Below, in pieces: positions 1,201 through 49,562 of a DNA stretch of 64,000 bases. The translations under genes and the position numbers were made by a program. The stretch lies in the sequence record ON529850.1. One strand, 5' to 3'. Each line of letters starts with the position of its first letter. The stretch's first letter is position 1. A model generated the notes under the pieces. The model worked only from the letters and a program-made list of their open reading frames with translations, was not told the origin of the DNA and ran no database searches.

Positions 1201-1782
1201 GAAAGGCCCCGATCTCGCGATCGGGGCCTTTTTCATCGTGGCGGGGGCCTCAGTTTTCATCGCGCCGCGAACGGTCACGATCCCGCATCTCTTCGCACCG
1301 GGCGGACCCGGACTACTTTACCGCCGGTCCCCATATGGCGAACCCCGGAGGCAGGGCCTCAAGCGCATCCTACCAGCGCCTCAGCGGTGTGTGAGGAAGG
1401 GCTTCTCACCTCACGATGAACAGTTCGGGCAGATCAGCGGTGCACCGCCGAACTGCCCTGGCAACGCCCGAAGACGCTGGGCGTGGGGAGAAGCGTCACG
1501 CCGGTCCCCGCGCCCCAGCATTACGCCGGCTTGTCAACGAAACGGCCGGTGGGGACTTGCCCGACCGGCCGCTCTTGATCAGGGGAGTGGCGTACCTGTC
1601 CCGATGATCGGTGTCGACGGCGCATGATCGAAGATCAGAGGAGCCGGTCGACTGCTAAACTAAACGCCCCGGCGTTCCAGCTGGGGCCTGCGTGTGGCCT
1701 TACGGTCCATACCGCCTTGGTCCGTTCCAGGAGCCATCCCGCATGTCGCGGTTGTCAGGGTAAAACGCACCTGACTGCGAAG
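1201..1782 (-). ncRNA. Candidate large structured non-coding RNA (~580 nt)
   Basis: Bounded by a perfect promoter and a terminator; no minus-strand ORF of 60 aa or more; many helices and long-range 5'/3' pairings (see findings). Confidence 0.75.
1202..1231 (-). terminator. Intrinsic terminator (possibly bidirectional)
   Basis: 13-bp stem aaaggccccgatc/gatcggggccttt; GNRA loop (GCGA) on the minus strand; T-runs on both sides. Confidence 0.85.
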
Positions 1783-1788
1783 GTGTGT

Positions 1789-1816
1789 ATTATAATGATA
1801 CAACGGTCGCTGTCAA
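1789..1816 (-). promoter_or_regulatory. sigma70-type promoter, perfect consensus
   Basis: Minus strand TTGACA (1816-1811), 16 nt, TATAAT (1794-1789). Confidence 0.85.
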
Positions 1817-1828
1817 GTTTTGAATCGT

Positions 1829-2002
1829 TCAATCCTCGACCGGGGCACAACGACGCCAGAGCCATGTCTTGACGCCGTCCTCGCTTTCGTAGAGGCCGTG
1901 CACCGGGCAATCCTGCCGAACGTAGTCCAGGACGGCGCCATCCGGCGCGTGCAGGGTGATCAAGAGGTGGTTTCCCGCCACCTGGCAATTACAGTCTTCC
2001 AT
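1829..2002 (-). CDS. Small 57-aa protein with CxC...CPxH putative Zn-binding motif
   Basis: Below the ORF-track cutoff. MEDCNCQVAGNHLLITLHAPDGAVLDYVRQDCPVHGLYESEDGVKTWLWRRCAPVED; TGATG stop/start overlap with the o-spanin gene. Confidence 0.7.
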   Translation of the reverse strand: MEDCNCQVAGNHLLITLHAPDGAVLDYVRQDCPVHGLYESEDGVKTWLWRRCAPVED

Positions 2003-6675: not shown

Positions 6676-7760
6676 TAAGTCGGACTCCGAATGATGGTGA
6701 TGTCTTGATGGGTCGACCGAACGGAATCCGCCAATCGAAACTGCACGCAACTGATGCTGGCGTGAGTAACTCTAGGCCCCGCTGCATCACGTTGAGAGAT
6801 GACGTTGAGATATTCTTGGGTAACCCGAATAGGTTGAGGATCATCCGGGTAAGCGTGGATCACCAGAGCGCCTGGATACCCCGCTACCGTCCTTTCACCC
6901 CCATATCCGACAAAATTTCCAGGGTAGTCGGCATCGGCAATATTGGCGGGCACCGTTGTGATGTCGGCGATTGTGAACTTCGGCGCTTGGTGAAATGCGT
7001 CTGAAGGGATGATGAAGGACGACCCGCCTCCGCCATGTCCGGTATAAAGGCTGTCCAGGTAATAGGCCCCGCCTCCGCCATAGTATCCGCCGCCACCGCC
7101 GCCGCCGGCGCGATTCTCCGCCGTATCAATCTGATTGGCGTAGCCTCGGCCCCCTTGAAGGAATCCACCGCGCCCCGCCGGATTCTCAATAAGCGCCGCT
7201 TCAGGCAGAGGCACGCCTCCCTCCGTCGTTCCTCCCCCCGTTGCCTGTGCGGAACTCCCGCCGAAAGGCGCGTTCACCCCGCCCGCGATGCCGCCTCGGC
7301 CCGCGCCGCTGAGATATACGCCGCCGCCTCCGCCACCCCCCGCGACCAGAGACAAGACGCCGGATTTCCAGAACATGGTGGAGCCGCCGCCGCCGCTCGC
7401 GCGCGATCCGCGACCACGCCCACCATTCCCGCCGTCAGGCCAACCGCCATACCCGCCTCGTGAGGACCCCGCCGTGTCCACGCCCAGTTCACCGCCGCTG
7501 CCTACTTGTATTGCAACAACGTCTCCGGGCGTGACTTCGAACATGTGGTTCGCATAACCGCCCGCGCCGCCCGCTCCCCAAAGATCGTTGCGAACAGGGC
7601 CAGCTCCCCCCGATCCCCAGGCCTTGATTTCAATCAGGCGACAGCCTTCCGGAATGCGGCGAAATTCCCGCGTGCGCGTGAAGGTGAACAAGGTCATCCC
7701 CAACGCCAGCATAGGCGCCAGGGCAGACCGGGCCGCCGCGTAAAACCCAGGAATAATCAT
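6675..7760 (-). CDS. Glycine-rich domain virion protein (one GGWPDGG module)
   Basis: KAWGSGG...GGWPDGG...GGGGST...GGGGGGGYYGGGG module also found in the 2660-aa and 3020-aa proteins. Confidence 0.75.
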   Translation of the reverse strand: MIIPGFYAAARSALAPMLALGMTLFTFTRTREFRRIPEGCRLIEIKAWGSGGAGPVRNDLWGAGGAGGYANHMFEVTPGDVVAIQVGSGGELGVDTAGSSRGGYGGWPDGGNGGRGRGSRASGGGGSTMFWKSGVLSLVAGGGGGGGVYLSGAGRGGIAGGVNAPFGGSSAQATGGGTTEGGVPLPEAALIENPAGRGGFLQGGRGYANQIDTAENRAGGGGGGGYYGGGGAYYLDSLYTGHGGGGSSFIIPSDAFHQAPKFTIADITTVPANIADADYPGNFVGYGGERTVAGYPGALVIHAYPDDPQPIRVTQEYLNVISQRDAAGPRVTHASISCVQFRLADSVRSTHQDITIIRSPT

Positions 7761-46256: not shown

Positions 46257-46375
46257 TGGAGCGGGTGGGAAGACTTGAACTTCCGCCTCCGGGTTAGCGA
46301 CCCGGCACTCCTGATCTCGGCCGAGACCCGCAACCCGGTTCGGCCGAACCTGCTGCGCCCTAGAGCTTCACCCGC
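46257..46375 (-). tRNA. 119-nt tRNA-like RNA: Gly-type acceptor, GCU (Ser) anticodon, 52-nt D-loop insertion
   Basis: GCGGGUG/CACCCGC, U73, CCA; CCGGG-UCGCUAA-CCCGG; GGAAG-UUCAAGU-CUUCC; short variable loop. Confidence 0.72.
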
Positions 46376-46379
46376 ATAA

Positions 46380-46610
46380 GGCGGCAGGAGTTTTAAAGGT
46401 GATGCGTCACCGGGCAAGCCCCCTGCCAGAAACCCCGTCTCCGCTTTTGTGAGGTCCAGAGACGAACGACCCTTCAAAGGCTCACATGGCACGACGTCGT
46501 CTCACGCGCTCCAGGCGTAGTCGCCCGAAACCGCAAGCCCGAGAGGTGGTGCGCGATGGTATCGCCTTCCCGAGGCGACGCCTTGCGACGCCGCGATCTT
46601 GTGTGGGGAT
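46380..46610 (-). ncRNA. Candidate structured RNA (~230 nt) upstream of the 119-nt tRNA
   Basis: Follows terminator 46647-46674 and TTGACG (46638-46633); helices UCGCC/GGCGA, UGUGAG/CUCACA, GGCAGGGG/CUCCUGCC, GGUGA/UCACC. Confidence 0.45.
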
Positions 46611-46646
46611 TACTGGCACTGTTCGACACGGGCGTCAACAAAGAAA

Positions 46647-46674
46647 AACGCCCCGGCGTTTCGGCCGGGGCGTT
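46647..46674 (-). terminator. Intrinsic terminator
   Basis: aacgccccggc/gccggggcgtt followed by tttcttt on the minus strand. Confidence 0.85.
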
Positions 46675-46676
46675 CT

Positions 46677-46994
46677 TCAGAGGTTCATCATCCACTGCTT
46701 GCGGTAGCGCGTGAAATCCTTCCAGGATTTGCCGGCGCGGCGGGACGCCATGATGTCGTCCCAGGAGGACGGCAGATGCTTCCGGTTCCCCCGCACGGAG
46801 ACGACACGATCATGGACGTCACCGGCGTTTCGACGGCGTTCCTGCATGGTGCGCGGATGCCGGAAATACTGCCGCCAGACGTGGCGGAACTCGCGGCAAC
46901 GCAGAGGATCGCCCTGGACCCCGCCGTAGTAATAGGTCCAGCAGCCGATCCACAGAAATCCGTGGTGGGTGATGCGTTGGAATTGGGGCTTCAA
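46677..46994 (-). CDS. Hypothetical phage protein
   Basis: R.P.T.QERR...R..R..LPSSWDD.......KSWK...RKQW; followed by a terminator. Confidence 0.75.
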   Translation of the reverse strand: MKPQFQRITHHGFLWIGCWTYYYGGVQGDPLRCREFRHVWRQYFRHPRTMQERRRNAGDVHDRVVSVRGNRKHLPSSWDDIMASRRAGKSWKDFTRYRKQWMMNL

Positions 46995-47097: not shown

Positions 47098-47186
47098 TGG
47101 CGGATGGGGCAGGGATCGAACCCGCGTAACCCTCTCGGGTGTCGACCGCTTAGCAAGCGGCTGCCTTACCTCTCGGCCACCCATCC
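47098..47186 (-). tRNA. tRNA-Ser(GCU)
   Basis: Loop UUGCUAA; long variable arm; G73; CCA. Confidence 0.93.
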
Positions 47187-47193
47187 GTGGGTG

Positions 47194-47278
47194 TGGCGGT
47201 GAACCAGGGAATCGAACCCTCAACCTTGCGGTCGGCTACGGTTTTCAAGGCCGCTTGTCCCCATGGACGCTGCTCACC
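47194..47278 (-). tRNA. tRNA-Ser(UGA), allo-tRNA-like D-arm and 4-bp T-stem
   Basis: Loop CUUGAAA; D-arm GUCC-AUGG-GGAC; AGGG-UUCGAUU-CCCU; CCA. Confidence 0.82.
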
Positions 47279-47285
47279 ATAAAGG

Positions 47286-47375
47286 TGGCGGACGGCGCGC
47301 GATTCGAACGCGCGGACCCTTGCGGGCCGCCTGCTTTCCGGGCAGGTGCCTTAAGCCAGACTCAGCCAGCCGTCC
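47286..47375 (-). tRNA. tRNA-Ser(GGA), C33
   Basis: Loop CCGGAAA; long variable arm; G73; CCA. Confidence 0.9.
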
Positions 47376-47380
47376 GTTGT

Positions 47381-47598
47381 TGGTGGAGGCGAGGGGATTC
47401 GAACCCCCGTAGACGCCGAACCCCCGCATTACCAGGGGCCGATCTTCGGTTTAGAACGCGTGTGCCGCTCTGACCATCTTCCGCAGGCCAGGTGGTCTAT
47501 CGTAACGACCCCGTCGATCGGTTGCCTCTGCGCCCCGGTTTTACCCGGACCGTTATCCTGTTCCACGGTGCTCATGCCGAAACCCGAGCGACGCCCCC
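47381..47598 (-). ncRNA. ssrA: Compact one-piece tmRNA-like RNA (218 nt)
   Basis: 5' GGGGGCG pairs with 3' CGCCUCC including G3.U70; A73; CCA; T-arm GGGG-UUCGAAU-CCCC; GGGUUUCGGC D-analogue; no anticodon arm. Confidence 0.78.
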
Positions 47599-47607
47599 GT
47601 GAAGAAA

Positions 47608-47695
47608 TGGAGGATGGTGTGGGATTCGAACCCACGGAACCTTGCGGTCCTCCGGCTTTCGAAACCGGTGCGATCGGCCACTCCGCCAACCATCC
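47608..47695 (-). tRNA. tRNA-Ser(CGA)
   Basis: Loop UUCGAAA; long variable arm; U73; CCA. Confidence 0.9.
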
Positions 47696-47702
47696 ATATC
47701 AG

Positions 47703-47888
47703 TCAGGCGGCCGCCGGACTGTAGTTGTCGATGTCGTCGACCCGGATCGCCGTTCCCGCCGCGATTTGGCGGTCGGCGCTCAACAGGTCGGCGACCAGGT
47801 CCTCCGCCGAGACGTCGCCGCCGGAAGTGGCGAACTTGACGTTCACCACTCCATTGTCGTACATCTCGGCGATCGCTGAGCGATCCAT
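47703..47888 (-). CDS. Small hypothetical protein (61 aa) inside the tRNA array
   Basis: AAAGG RBS; acidic, protein-like composition; fills the gap between two tRNAs. Confidence 0.65.
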   Translation of the reverse strand: MDRSAIAEMYDNGVVNVKFATSGGDVSAEDLVADLLSADRQIAAGTAIRVDDIDNYSPAAA

Positions 47889-47921
47889 GGCATGCCTTTC
47901 TGCCGGCGTCGCCGGCGGTTA

Positions 47922-47997
47922 TGGTGGAGATGAGGGGAGTCGAACCCCTGACATCCTGCTTGCAAGGCAGGTGCTCTACCAACTGAGCTACATCCCC
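47922..47997 (-). tRNA. tRNA-Ala(UGC)
   Basis: Canonical; G3.U70; loop CUUGCAA; CCA. Confidence 0.96.
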
Positions 47998-48027
47998 AAG
48001 ATGGGTGTCAGTTTTCCTGACAATTGT

Positions 48028-48103
48028 TGGGCCTGGCACTCGGATTCGAACCGAGCCATGCGGCTCCACAAACCGCCGCCTCCACCGCAGAGGCTTTACC
48101 AGG
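48028..48103 (-). tRNA. tRNA-His(GUG)
   Basis: Loop UUGUGGA; C73; no encoded G-1; CCA. Confidence 0.87.
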
Positions 48104-48105
48104 AT

Positions 48106-48193
48106 TGGTCGCAGCGACAGGAATCGAACCTGCCCGGCCTTTCGGCCACCAGCCTCTCATGCTGGCGCGTCTACCAGACTCCGCCACGCTGCG
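48106..48193 (-). tRNA. tRNA-Leu(GAG)
   Basis: Loop AUGAGAG; variable arm; A73; CCA. Confidence 0.92.
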
Positions 48194-48202
48194 ATCAAAA
48201 GT

Positions 48203-48288
48203 TGGTGCCGGTGGTGGGATTCGCACCCACCCGCCACTAAGGACACCAGTTTCTGAAACTGGCGCGTCTACTGCTTCGCCACACCGGC
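48203..48288 (-). tRNA. tRNA-Leu(CAG), T-loop UGCGAAU
   Basis: Loop UUCAGAA; variable arm; A73; CCA. Confidence 0.87.
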
Positions 48289-48298
48289 AATGATGTGT

Positions 48299-48384
48299 TG
48301 GTGCCCGCCCCCGGACTCGAACCGGGACGCCACGAGGGCCACGCCTTTTGAGGACGCTGCGTCTACCTTTCCGTCCAGACGGGC
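48299..48384 (-). tRNA. tRNA-Leu(CAA)
   Basis: Loop CUCAAAA; variable arm; A73; CCA. Confidence 0.88.
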
Positions 48385-48393
48385 TTGAGAAGA

Positions 48394-48479
48394 TGGTGCG
48401 GGCGAGAGGATTCGAACCTCCCCGGCACAAGGCCACGGGCATCTGAAGCCCGCGCGGCTACCAGCTTCGCCACGCCCGC
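48394..48479 (-). tRNA. tRNA-Leu(CAG), second divergent copy
   Basis: Loop UUCAGAU; canonical T-loop; CCA. Confidence 0.92.
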
Positions 48480-48483
48480 ACTT

Positions 48484-48565
48484 TGGAGAACCACGGTGGA
48501 GTCGAACCACTTGCGCCTGGATTAAAAGCCCAATCCCGGCCACCCGGATTTAACGCTCGTGGTCC
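48484..48565 (-). tRNA. tRNA-Lys(UUU), (8/4)-type fold
   Basis: GGACCACG/CGUGGUUC; GUGG-UUCGACU-CCAC; 9-nt linker before a tetraloop D-arm; loop CUUUUAA; CCA. Confidence 0.75.
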
Positions 48566-48580
48566 TCGATTCTCGAATAT

Positions 48581-48667
48581 TGGAGGATGTGGTGGGACTC
48601 GAACCCACGATGGACTTTCGTCAGAGGATTAAGAGCCCTCCCCTCTCGCCGCTGAGGTGACACATCC
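48581..48667 (-). tRNA. tRNA-Lys(CUU) with a variable arm
   Basis: Loop CUCUUAA; arm GAC-GAAA-GUC; U73; CCA. Confidence 0.85.
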
Positions 48668-48703
48668 GTTTAAACTGTATAGCGTCTCCATGAAGACTGT
48701 TGA

Positions 48704-48774
48704 TGGTGCCAGCGGAGCGGGATCGCACCCTCCTCCAACCACTACGAAAGGCTGGTCCTCCTAGAGGCGCCGGC
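48704..48774 (-). tRNA. tRNA-Thr(CGU), atypical (mini D-arm, extended anticodon stem)
   Basis: GCCGGCG/CGCUGGC; CCUC-UAG-GAGG; CCAGCC/GGUUGG around UUCGUAG; A73; CCA. Confidence 0.62.
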
Positions 48775-48782
48775 GTTGTTCT

Positions 48783-48853
48783 TGGTGCCAAGAGTGGGAG
48801 TCAAACCCACCCTGAACCCCTACCACGGGCTCGTCCGGTCACCCGGCCTTGGC
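48783..48853 (-). tRNA. tRNA-Thr(GGU), atypical (mini D-arm, 6-bp anticodon stem)
   Basis: GCCAAGG/UCUUGGC; CCGG-GUGA-CCGG; GAGCCC-GUGGUAG-GGGUUC; 3-nt variable loop; CCA. Confidence 0.68.
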
Positions 48854-48860
48854 GTTATCC

Positions 48861-48935
48861 TGGTCAGAGCGGGAGGTCTCGAACCTCCGACCCCTGCCTT
48901 CCCGAGACAGTGCGCTACCCCTGCGCCACACTCTG
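48861..48935 (-). tRNA. tRNA-Pro(GGG), C33 and A37
   Basis: C1-G72, A73; loop UCGGGAA; CCA. Confidence 0.87.
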
Positions 48936-48938
48936 ATC

Positions 48939-49013
48939 TGGTCTGGGCCGAGGGGATCGAACCCCCGTCATCCGGCTCCCAAAGCCGGCGCCTAACCGCT
49001 CGGCCAGACCCAG
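48939..49013 (-). tRNA. tRNA-Pro(UGG)
   Basis: Loop UUUGGGA; CCA. Confidence 0.93.
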
Positions 49014-49028
49014 ATTGTTATTAAGAAA

Positions 49029-49106
49029 TGGTCTGCGCATCAGGATTTGAACCTGAGACCCCCACGCTCCGAAGGTGGTACTCTGACCAGGCTGAGCTAT
49101 ACGCAG
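49029..49106 (-). tRNA. tRNA-Pro(CGG)
   Basis: Loop UUCGGAG; CCA. Confidence 0.92.
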
Positions 49107-49119
49107 ATGTGAAAAACGA

Positions 49120-49150
49120 AAAGGCCCCAGAGGCGTTGCGCCTGGGGCCT
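49120..49150 (-). terminator. Intrinsic terminator directly upstream of the central tRNA operon (attenuator)
   Basis: aggccccag/ctggggcct stem followed by tttcgttttt on the minus strand. Confidence 0.85.
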
Positions 49151-49222
49151 AAAACAGCTGCTGATTTGGGAGTTCAGCAGGTGATCGGCCCCTCGGGCGC
49201 CTCACCTGCTGTAAGGAAGACC

Positions 49223-49360
49223 TTAGATGGTCTCCGTTGCAGAGGTGACGCCACCGGTGGTGGGGGATTTCGGCGACAGCGTGGCCGGCGCATAGGCGAG
49301 CGTCGACAGCGCCGAAGCGGCGGTCGAATGAAGGCTCAGCTTGTGCGACAACTTGGTCAC
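49223..49360 (-). CDS. Putative leader peptide (45 aa, Ser/Thr/Ala-rich)
   Basis: AAGGA RBS, GTG start; MTKLSHKLSLHSTAASALSTLAYAPATLSPKSPTTGGVTSATETI. Confidence 0.55.
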   Translation of the reverse strand: MTKLSHKLSLHSTAASALSTLAYAPATLSPKSPTTGGVTSATETI

Positions 49361-49408
49361 GAGAGAAATCCTTAGAAGGAAGGGCGTCGAAACGCGATTG
49401 AAGCTTCA

Positions 49409-49437
49409 TCTTTACAGCAAGCTTTTTGGCTTGTCAA
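49409..49437 (-). promoter_or_regulatory. sigma70-like promoter of the central tRNA operon
   Basis: TTGACA, 17 nt, TAAAGA. Confidence 0.65.
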
Positions 49438-49518
49438 GCAAAGATCGAAATTTATTTCGAGGGCTGCCCCTCGCGACGATTACTGCCAGATTTCCTGACA
49501 CACGTCAACCTGGAAAGT

Positions 49519-49559
49519 GACGCGCGCGGCCTCGGGGGAGCGGGAAGGCCGCGCGCGTC
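49519..49559 (-). terminator. 14-bp hairpin, probable terminator
   Basis: gacgcgcgcggcct/aggccgcgcgcgtc followed by acttt. Confidence 0.65.
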
Positions 49560-49562
49560 GGG

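Follow-up and report, generated by a model that had tools for sequence, protein, structure and literature searches.

The window analysed here is a stretch of 64,000 nucleotides from Brevundimonas phage vB_BpoS-Gurke (ON529850.1). On its minus strand, a short reading frame and a putative terminator lie immediately before a 2-kb block of tRNA genes (Table 1). A preliminary description made from the sequence alone had listed a promoter-like site, a ribosome-binding site, a 45-codon ORF, alternative pairings and a terminator and had proposed that mutually exclusive folds regulate the operon, and all of these sequence elements were confirmed. The downstream tRNAs were also as listed there, with two caveats: the two Thr genes are non-canonical cloverleaves that ARAGORN and Rfam do not call, and the "tmRNA-like gene" is a sub-threshold Rfam hit (31.7 bits against a gathering score of 47). 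Since only 15 nt separate the terminator from the first tRNA, all operon transcription must pass through the terminator. The latter is a sequence pattern only, with 12 bp and one bulge that made a generic scan miss it. The homologous terminator is annotated in the phiCbK, Karma and Swift records.

Table 1. Features of the leader, of the tRNA operon behind it and of related sites in the 64-kb window
Feature	Position	Strand	Details
Promoter-like site P1	49479-49508	-	TTGACG-N17-CAGTAAT
Promoter-like site P2	49409-49437	-	TTGACA (49437-49432), 17-nt spacer, TAAAGA (49414-49409); inferred transcription start near 49402
5' untranslated leader	49361-49408	-	Shine-Dalgarno-like AAGGA (49373-49369), 8 nt before the GTG
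Leader ORF	49223-49360	-	45 codons plus TAA
Regulatory codons 2-35	49256-49357	-	33 of 34 encode Pro/Thr/Lys/Leu/His/Ala/Ser
Segment 0	49229-49251	-	last codons of the ORF; pairs with segment 1, stop codon in the apical loop
Segment 1	49196-49222	-	pairs with segment 0 (20 bp) or with segment 2 (15 bp)
Arms of the hairpin after the stop	49211-49202, 49184-49175	-	within the 1:2 hairpin
Segment 2	49174-49192	-	3' arm of hairpin 1:2 or 5' arm of antiterminator 2:3; GGGGCC (49192-49187), CUGCUGA (49180-49174)
Segment 3	49139-49164	-	3' arm of the antiterminator or 5' arm of the terminator; UCAGCAG (49164-49158) complementary to CUGCUGA, GGCCCC (49149-49144) complementary to GGGGCC
Terminator	49122-49150	-	12 bp and one bulge
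Segment 4 and U tract	49112-49135	-	terminator 3' arm (49135-49122), U tract (49121-49112)
tRNA operon	47098-49106	-	Pro(CGG, UGG, GGG), two Thr-like cloverleaves (48853-48783 with GGU; 48774-48704 with CGU and a 9-nt loop), Lys(CUU), Leu(CAG, CAA, CAG, GAG), His(GUG), Ala(UGC), a 61-codon CDS, Ser(CGA), a tmRNA-like stretch, Ser(GGA), a further tRNA-like stretch, Ser(GCU); tRNA-Pro starts at 49106
tmRNA-like sub-threshold hit	47381-47598
Second copy of the P1 pattern	46609-46638
Weak His_leader match	46640-46756		carried by another terminator
43.5-kb leader	43489-43394 (ORF), 43367-43336 (terminator)
21-codon ORF before Glu-Asp	50441-50376

The -10 element of P2 is weak, as it matches the E. 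coli consensus at only 3 of 6 positions, and it was not listed by a generic promoter scan. However, the pattern TTGAC-N17-GTARA occurs exactly twice in the 64 kb (expected 0.02), at this leader and at a second leader at 43.5 kb, although it should be noted that the pattern was derived from these two sites. The position of P2 is conserved in 7 phages. The -35 of P1 is invariant in all 8 Brevundimonas phages, including Bajun, which lacks P2, and the second copy of this site compares with 0.03 copies expected by chance.

Codon content and conservation of the leader

We next asked whether the codons of the ORF reflected the genes behind it. Of its 44 sense codons, 38 encode the seven amino acids whose tRNAs follow, against a background of 0.42. 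None of 11,725 44-codon windows in the annotated genes of the phage reached this value (maximum 31), and only the ORF itself did so among 597 six-frame ORFs. Moreover, 13 of the 14 distinct downstream anticodons have their exact codon in the leader, while the median for gene windows was 7 and the maximum 12. This enrichment, already noted in the preliminary description, is far beyond chance. Interestingly, the non-matching codons cluster in the last 10 codons, which form segment 0. As a cross-control we used the 43.5-kb leader, which is unrelated in sequence: 14 of 15 of its codons (codons 4-18) fall in the set Tyr/Val/Ile/Gln/Asn/Arg, the tRNAs that follow it, and it matches its own operon and not this one, whereas the leader studied here matches the set of that other operon in only 3 of 44 codons. 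In contrast, no comparable leader was found before the other tRNA clusters of the phage, since Glu-Asp has a promoter and a 21-codon ORF with only 3 Glu/Asp codons and no terminator, and Trp-Gly-Gly follows a protein gene directly.

The ORF is unannotated in the Gurke record, but it recurs in 17 related phages examined and is annotated as a hypothetical protein in Bajun (BAJUN_02440), phiCbK (gp335), Rogue, BL10, Ccr10, Karma, RBC57 and BL47. Its frame, start and stop are kept, indels come in multiples of 3, and a GGA core at the same distance from the start is conserved. Across 16 of the 17 phages with a leader (BL47 was not part of this count), 26 regulatory columns vary, often non-conservatively (K/T, H/L/P, K/S, L/S), and even so 52 of 54 residue states stay in the amino-acid set, while only 0.47 of possible single-base replacements would. 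While phiCbK gp335 matches phrog_12742 at 4.8e-28, the Gurke and Colossus peptides gave no hit to it at E-values up to 1, no PHROG or Pfam family matched the Gurke peptide, and the Gurke, phiCbK and Colossus peptides are not recognisably one protein family. These results show that composition is conserved and not peptide sequence. A search of 5.8 billion proteins returned one near-identical protein and no new lineages. In IMG/VR, the invariant 19-mer gave no hit, and a degenerate pattern gave 24 loci of which only the Karma genome was real, the rest having no nearby tRNAs.

The content of the leader also followed that of the operon. BL47 alone has tRNA-Trp at the end of this operon, and it alone has a Trp codon in the regulatory part. 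Similarly, in the other leader, phages with a Phe tRNA carry Phe where phages with an Asn tRNA carry Asn. The 9 Thr codons of the Gurke leader pointed to the two uncalled Thr-like cloverleaves, and ARAGORN calls Thr at the same place in Bajun, Karma and BL47.

Two rival explanations bear on these data. The first is that this is an ordinary small phage gene with its own terminator, the tRNAs being made by constitutive leak-through or by a polymerase made termination-resistant later in infection, and the codon match being a by-product of a low-complexity Pro/Ala/Ser/Thr-rich peptide. In its favor, several records annotate a hypothetical protein, gp335 has its own PHROG, the nucleotide sequence of the ORF is highly conserved, the seven amino acids are common ones, and Pro/Ala/Ser/Thr/Lys-rich low-complexity peptides exist for other reasons. 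However, we consider it unlikely in view of the second leader, whose different and rarer amino-acid set belongs to its own operon, of the replacements that stay inside the set, of the representation of 13 of 14 anticodons, of the clustering of the exceptions in the segment that pairs with the switch, and of the lack of a Pfam match and of a recognisable common family for the Gurke, phiCbK and Colossus peptides. The second is that the ORF is not translated and that the region is a purely RNA-based element that binds tRNA or a protein directly. Although third codon positions are strongly conserved in parts of the ORF and an internal ORF hairpin is predicted, this seems very unlikely, because the frame, start, stop and 3n indels are kept in all 17 phages with a leader, a Shine-Dalgarno-like element sits at a fixed distance, the composition is defined at the codon level, and no Rfam family, T-box included, matched the region at E-values up to 5.

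Predicted folds of the leader RNA

Folding confirmed the alternative pairings of the preliminary description, both of which appeared in the minimum-energy fold, and the helices proposed there are mutually exclusive with each other as folds of the leader, but folding gave five segments and not four. The additional one, segment 0, comprises the last about 8 codons of the ORF and pairs with the 5' arm of the hairpin after the stop. A ribosome at the stop codon does not reach that hairpin, so without segment 0 the scheme has no coupling to translation. The helix energies fall in transcription order: -28.8 (0:1), -25.3 (1:2), -23.7 (2:3, 6+9 bp) and -20.7 kcal/mol (terminator). In every lineage, 0:1 plus 2:3 beat 1:2 plus 3:4 when segment 0 was free and lost when it was masked, disregarding Kikimora, for which the helices could not be separated automatically (a single domain). 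Analogous 2:3 helices occur in the Colossus, phiCbK and BL47 families, and the topology recurs in sequence families that cannot be aligned with each other. The stop codon sits in or at the apical loop of the 0:1 hairpin in 7 of 8 lineages, although the hairpin sequences differ.

With the 3' end of the ORF free, the minimum-energy fold was 0:1 plus 2:3, and with a ribosome masking through stop+10 it was 1:2 plus terminator, in Gurke, Domovoi, Bambus, Colossus and phiCbK. Bajun, where the stop lies only 5 nt from segment 1, showed only the first half, and the masked fold did not give hairpin 1:2 plus terminator. In Rogue, the unmasked minimum-energy fold already kept 1:2 plus the terminator, although the probability of the terminator stem still dropped from 0.96 to 0.53. 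Overall, this equilibrium probability was 0.82-0.97 with the mask, 0.11-0.53 with no ribosome and 0.13-0.68 with a ribosome stalled at codon 20; Bajun was disregarded here, since a wrong helix of 4 bp had been taken for its terminator. Shuffled upstream sequence gave a mean of 0.7-0.9 and reached the observed low value in 1.5-4.5% of shuffles in five of the lineages, but in 20% of shuffles in Colossus. Moreover, equilibrium folding of transcripts cut before the 3' arm of the terminator showed the 5' arm paired in every ribosome state and did not separate the two conformations, and a switch would therefore have to be kinetic. Column-wise covariation within each phage group was thin: nearly all helix positions are invariant, the only compensatory pair lies in a small hairpin common to both conformers, and apparently broken pairs in the apical 0:1 hairpin came from aligning non-homologous hairpins. 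In Colossus and BL47 the terminator is weak or lacks a good U tract.

It is possible, though not likely, that the ORF senses translation with an output different from the proposed hairpin cascade, such as Rho-dependent termination on untranslated leader RNA, ribosome-dependent RNA processing or stability, or the inverse logic in which fast translation gives read-through. The truncated-transcript folding and the weak terminators of Colossus and BL47 are in line with this, as is Bajun, where a ribosome at the stop would cover part of segment 1 and favor 2:3, and the motif CCCAAA between segments 2 and 3 is conserved in most lineages without a pairing role. In contrast, the terminator is strong in the Gurke, Domovoi and phiCbK lineages, the topology and its energy order recur in unalignable families, and positive feedback would not explain why non-operon codons are excluded.

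Between Gurke and Domovoi, the regulatory codons are 85% identical and segments 1-4 are 89% identical, whereas the adjacent tRNA-Pro is 64% identical and the 5' UTR 54%. The very high conservation of segments 1-4 could also suggest that the main product is the short terminated RNA and/or the peptide acting in trans, control of the tRNAs being secondary, and there is precedent in an alphaproteobacterium in the trp attenuator RNA rnTrpL and peptide peTrpL of Sinorhizobium (PMC6614838, PMC7298713). This is improbable, since no target is known, the peptide sequence is not conserved between groups, and the conservation is already explained by each base serving two helices.

Discussion

We believe that a ribosome-mediated (leader-peptide) transcription attenuator, whose regulatory codons are those read by the tRNAs of the operon behind it, is the best explanation for these results, with a probability of about 0.65; the evidence is entirely computational, and translation of the ORF, coupling to polymerase and regulated termination are inferred. 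According to this hypothesis, transcripts start at P2, and possibly also at P1, and a ribosome translates the leader while RNA polymerase moves on. If decoding of Pro, Thr, Lys, Leu, His, Ala or Ser codons is slow, the ribosome would lag within codons 2-35, segment 0 would pair with segment 1, and segment 2 would stay free and capture segment 3, so that the terminator could not form and polymerase would read into the tRNA genes. If those codons are read fast, the ribosome would reach segment 0 in time and keep it single-stranded, segment 1 would pair with segment 2 and segment 3 with segment 4, and transcription would stop before tRNA-Pro. The result would be a feedback in which tRNA supply is raised when the cognate codons limit translation. 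The interpretation of the preliminary description, including a repetition of the same logic at the 43.5-kb leader, is supported, with the addition of segment 0.

The attenuators of enterobacterial amino-acid operons (thr, ilvGMEDA, and also his, leu, trp, pheA) likewise have a promoter-proximal short ORF rich in regulatory codons, an intrinsic terminator before the first structural gene and overlapping alternative hairpins whose choice depends on where the ribosome sits, a dependence that is only inferred here, and the thr and ilv leaders also sense more than one amino acid. They control biosynthetic enzymes, whereas here the first gene is tRNA-Pro, followed by about 17 tRNA or tRNA-like genes, and the leader samples seven amino acids spread over 34 codons with no tandem runs. 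With five segments, the untranslated default would be read-through rather than super-attenuation, and the stalled ribosome would leave the first segment free instead of covering it. No Rfam leader family (Thr_leader, His_leader, Leu_leader, Trp_leader and others) matched the leader at gathering or permissive thresholds, the only such hit in the stretch being the weak His_leader match. In the pheST attenuator (pheM leader) and other attenuators of aminoacyl-tRNA synthetase genes, the mechanism controls a component of the translation machinery that serves the sensed codons, but this is a protein enzyme for one amino acid and not the tRNA itself for many. The T-box riboswitch provides feedback on tRNA status through a terminator/antiterminator choice in a 5' leader, but it binds uncharged tRNA directly, without translation, and controls protein genes in Gram-positive bacteria. 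The 43.5-kb leader has the same promoter architecture and a strong terminator and is conserved in 39 phage records, but its layout is simpler: ORF codons 18-21 repeat the 3' arm of the terminator with one change and can hold the 5' arm, and at equilibrium its terminator forms in every ribosome state. Finally, the homologous locus of the classical Caulobacter phage phiCbK has a 45-codon ORF, then a terminator, then tRNA-Pro, with the same predicted five-segment switch, but beyond the first codons it is not alignable with Gurke. It is annotated only as a hypothetical protein plus a predicted terminator, the phiCbK genome paper contains no occurrence of "attenuat" or "leader" (PMC3556154), and we found no description of the element in the searchable literature.

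It is somewhat more likely than not that phages of the Dolichocephalovirinae put before two of their tRNA operons a reading frame that works as a table of contents, listing the codons of the tRNAs encoded behind it, and that ribosome speed on that frame sets how often polymerase reads into the operon. That would be the first attenuator whose sensed molecules are the RNA products of the operon itself, and would extend leader-peptide attenuation from enzymes to RNA products, and it would involve the model phage phiCbK and its host Caulobacter, where expression measurements are feasible. A corollary is that leader composition predicts non-canonical tRNA genes that standard tools miss, and here it pointed to Thr, Arg and Tyr-like cloverleaves and to a hairpin with a His anticodon. 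Why large phages carry tRNA genes, and how they are expressed, is still debated. A leader that reads out decoding speed for the anticodons of its own operon would show that tRNA supply is regulated on demand, would give a direct handle on when host tRNA pools become limiting during infection, and would give a virus closed-loop control of its own tRNA supply, for example when host tRNAs are depleted or cleaved during infection.

Organization of the leader and of the tRNA operon behind it

Genes in this part of the window run on the minus strand of Brevundimonas phage vB_BpoS-Gurke (ON529850.1; record coordinate = window + 186000), a 321-kb member of the Dolichocephalovirinae, the phiCbK-like phages. 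ARAGORN found 24 tRNAs in the window, in four clusters, one of which lies directly behind the leader studied here. The record carries no annotation between a 95-codon hypothetical gene and the first of the three tRNA-Pro genes that open this cluster. The preliminary description had placed in this gap a promoter, a ribosome-binding site with a 45-codon ORF, a hairpin after the stop, two alternative pairings and a U-tailed terminator, and reading of the minus strand confirmed all of them, as summarized in the table below. A generic promoter and terminator scan listed neither the promoter nor the terminator, the -10 being weak and the terminator stem having a bulge. The architecture TTGAC-N17-GTARA occurs only here and before a second leader at 43.5 kb, and a second conserved promoter-like site lies 72 nt upstream of the first. 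The spacer between the two sites tolerates large changes, since Papperlapapp carries there an insertion of about 120 nt. Kabachok and Papperlapapp annotate a 50-codon CDS on the opposite strand across the promoter and the start of the leader ORF whereas the near-identical Domovoi does not. This CDS is probably a gene-caller artefact.

Features of the leader, of the operon and of related loci (window coordinates unless a phage is named; L004, L007 and L012 are the sequence stretches of Kabachok, Papperlapapp and phiCbK, respectively)
Feature	Coordinates	Strand	Details
Unannotated stretch	49107-49562		
Second promoter-like site	49508-49479	-	TTGACG-N17-CAGTAAT
Promoter-like site	49437-49432 and 49414-49409	-	TTGACA, 17-nt spacer, TAAAGA
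Putative ribosome-binding site	49373-49369	-	AAGGA, 8 nt before a GTG
Leader ORF	49360-49223	-	45 codons, ending in TAA
Predicted hairpin inside the ORF	49352-49281	-	16 + 10 bp
Segment 0	49251-49229	-	last codons of the ORF
Segment 1	49222-49196	-	sequence after the stop
Hairpin after the stop	49211-49202 and 49184-49175	-	two arms
Alternative pairing	49192-49187 and 49149-49144	-	GGGGCC against GGCCCC
Alternative pairing	49180-49174 and 49164-49158	-	CUGCUGA against UCAGCAG
Conserved motif between segments 2 and 3	49170-49165	-	CCCAAA
Predicted terminator	49150-49122	-	
U tract	49121-49112	-	
tRNA cluster	49106-47098	-	begins with tRNA-Pro at 49106
tRNA-like cloverleaf	48853-48783	-	anticodon GGU, 7-nt loop
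tRNA-like cloverleaf	48774-48704	-	anticodon CGU, centred in a 9-nt loop
phiCbK stretch at the same place	L012 about 6957-7027 and 7032-7103		9-nt loop recurs
Sub-threshold tmRNA match	47381-47598	-	31.7 bits, gathering score 47, E-value 3e-10
Uncalled tRNA-like stretch	47197-47279	-	Rfam tRNA-Sec model, 29.7 bits
Strong terminator	46678-46643		
Second copy of the TTGACG-N17-CAGTAAT site	46638-46609	-	
Stretch behind this second copy	46260-46608		about 280 nt unannotated, and a weak tRNA hit (46260-46331, 31 bits)
Leader at 43.5 kb	43560-43283	-	
ORF of the 43.5-kb leader	43489-43394	-	31 codons
tRNA-like gene	42593-42513	-	Arg anticodon ACG, long variable arm, Rfam tRNA-Sec-like at 28 bits
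tRNA-like gene	about 42490-42408	-	Arg anticodon CCG
Region before the Glu-Asp cluster	50477-50342	-	perfect TTGACA promoter-like site
ORF before the Glu-Asp cluster	50441-50376	-	21 codons, nearly leaderless
Insertion in Papperlapapp	L007 about 1730-1850		alignment columns 156-277
CDS in Kabachok	L004 1790-1942	-	50 codons
CDS in Papperlapapp	L007 1910-2062	-	50 codons
Gap between Leu(GAG) and Ala in phiCbK	L012 7601-7683		83 nt

The anticodons of the operon are Pro CGG/UGG/GGG, Lys CUU, Leu CAG/CAA/GAG, His GUG, Ala UGC and Ser CGA/GGA/GCU. In addition, the 193-nt gap between Pro and Lys contains two tRNA-like cloverleaves that end in CCA and carry GGU and CGU, and that neither ARAGORN nor Rfam calls. 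However, ARAGORN does call tRNA-Thr at the same place in Bajun, Karma and BL47, and the 9-nt anticodon loop of the second cloverleaf recurs there in phiCbK. The phiCbK paper states that no Thr tRNA is present. The tmRNA-like gene of the preliminary description was recovered only as a sub-threshold match to the Rfam model between two tRNA-Ser genes, where ARAGORN calls no tmRNA, and another uncalled tRNA-like stretch lies between Ser(GGA) and Ser(GCU). A second copy of the upstream promoter-like site sits directly after a strong terminator, and the stretch that follows it may be an undescribed RNA gene.

Codon content of the leader

To ascertain whether the leader is enriched in codons read by the downstream tRNAs, we compared it with windows of 44 codons from annotated genes. 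Of its 44 sense codons, 38 encode the seven amino acids of the operon (background 0.42) and 28 are exact Watson-Crick cognates (background 0.27), and 33 of the first 34 encode these seven amino acids. None of 11,725 windows from 29 annotated genes reached the first two values (maxima 31 and 23), and among 597 six-frame ORFs only this one did. Moreover, 13 of the 14 distinct anticodons have their exact codon in the leader, while gene windows have a median of 7 and a maximum of 12. In contrast, against the tRNA set of the other operon the leader scored only 3 of 44.

The leader at 43.5 kb, which has the same promoter architecture, behaves in the same way for a different set. Its ORF precedes the Tyr, Val, Ile, Val, Gln and Asn tRNAs, and these are followed by two further tRNA-like cloverleaves whose Arg anticodons match the Arg codons of this leader. 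Fourteen of its codons 4-18 fall in the set Tyr/Val/Ile/Gln/Asn/Arg, and no 15-codon gene window exceeds 11. Codons 18-21 repeat the 3' arm of the terminator with one change and can therefore hold the 5' arm, although at equilibrium the terminator still wins in every ribosome state. This leader is conserved in 39 phage records. However, not every cluster has an attenuator, since the ORF before the Glu-Asp cluster contains only 3 Glu/Asp codons and there is no terminator.

Conservation of the leader in related phages

The 45-codon ORF and what follows it recur in Kikimora, Domovoi, Kabachok, Papperlapapp, Bambus, Marchewka and Bajun, in CcrColossus and CcrPW, in phiCbK (gp335, with a terminator annotated in the record), Karma, Ccr10, RBC57, BL10 and Rogue, and in BL47. 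Frame, start and stop are kept, and indels come in threes. Between Gurke and Domovoi, the regulatory codons are 85% identical and segments 1-4 are 89% identical, while identity is 64% in the neighbouring tRNA-Pro, 54% in the 5' UTR and under 60% in the apical part around the stop. The hairpin predicted inside the ORF lies in the stretch where third codon positions are invariant, and the CCCAAA motif in the loop between segments 2 and 3 is kept in the Brevundimonas, Colossus and BL47 versions although it is not needed for any predicted helix. In contrast, the peptide itself is not conserved: 17 of 34 regulatory columns vary within the Brevundimonas group, the Gurke peptide does not hit the PHROG that contains phiCbK gp335, and nothing hits Pfam. 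Even so, 52 of 54 residue states at the 26 variable regulatory columns stay inside the seven-amino-acid set, whereas only 0.47 of possible single-base replacements would do so. This pattern points to selection on which tRNAs read the frame, not on a folded peptide.

Leader content also follows tRNA gene content. BL47 is the only phage in which this operon ends with tRNA-Trp, and the only one with a Trp codon in the regulatory part. Similarly, in the 43.5-kb leader, phiCbK and Rogue, which have a Phe tRNA and no Asn tRNA in the cluster, carry Phe at the position where Gurke, Bajun, Domovoi and Colossus, which have an Asn tRNA, carry Asn, and BL47 has both tRNAs and both codons. Since these are few evolutionary events, we take them as consistent with the link rather than as proof. 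Although phiCbK has no called tRNA-His, its leader has three His codons, and the gap between Leu(GAG) and Ala holds a 5-bp stem with a 7-nt loop centred on GUG.

Predicted folds

The four segments of the preliminary description are real, but a ribosome at the stop codon ends about 10 nt short of the first hairpin. Folding suggested that the link to translation is a fifth element, in which the last codons of the ORF (segment 0) pair with the sequence after the stop (segment 1) in a 20-bp hairpin with the stop codon in its apical loop. With the 3' end of the ORF free, the minimum-energy fold is 0:1 plus 2:3, with no terminator, while with a ribosome masking through stop+10 it is 1:2 plus the terminator. 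Both halves hold in Gurke, Domovoi, Bambus, Colossus and phiCbK. However, Bajun, whose geometry differs, shows only the first, and the unmasked fold of Rogue already keeps 1:2 plus the terminator. The probability of the terminator stem is 0.82-0.97 with the mask, 0.11-0.53 with no ribosome and 0.13-0.68 with a ribosome stalled at codon 20. With shuffled upstream sequence the mean is 0.7-0.9, and the observed low value is reached in 1.5-4.5% of shuffles in five of the lineages and in 20% in Colossus. The terminators of Colossus and BL47 are weak.

Taken alone, the four helices have -28.8, -25.3, -23.7 and -20.7 kcal/mol in order of synthesis, which for a co-transcriptional switch means that each helix formed first is not displaced by the next. 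Equilibrium folding of transcripts cut before the 3' arm does not separate the states, so a decision between them would have to be kinetic. In all lineages 0:1+2:3 is more stable than 1:2+3:4 when segment 0 is free, and less stable when it is not, and the stop codon lies in or at the apical loop of the 0:1 hairpin in 7 of 8 lineages, although those hairpins differ in sequence. Inside each group the helices hardly vary, and the only compensatory pair found sits in a small hairpin shared by both conformers. The Brevundimonas, Colossus, phiCbK and BL47 versions cannot be aligned with each other downstream of the ORF, and yet they give the same topology.

Comparison with known attenuators and proposed mechanism

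The proposed element would work like the multivalent thr and ilv attenuators and like the pheST attenuator, but it would differ in that it controls tRNA genes, samples seven amino acids without tandem runs, and has five segments that make read-through the untranslated default. It matches no Rfam leader family and no T-box model. Full-text literature searches, which do not cover most subscription journals and so cannot exclude a prior mention, gave no description of it, and neither did the phiCbK genome paper (PMC3556154), in which 'attenuat' and 'leader' do not occur.

These results confirm the observation, and they support and extend the preliminary interpretation that mutually exclusive folds regulate the operon. 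We regard the link between the codons of the leader and the tRNAs as established, while for the attenuator model, which rests on sequence and folding without expression data, we put the probability at roughly 0.65. In this model, a ribosome slowed in codons 2-35 leaves 0:1 intact, segment 2 then takes segment 3, and polymerase reads into the tRNA genes. In contrast, a fast ribosome occupies segment 0, so that 1:2 and then the terminator form and transcription ends 15 nt before tRNA-Pro. The non-operon codons of the leader are confined to segment 0, where stalling would no longer signal shortage. As there is no room for a promoter after the terminator, the operon would depend on read-through.
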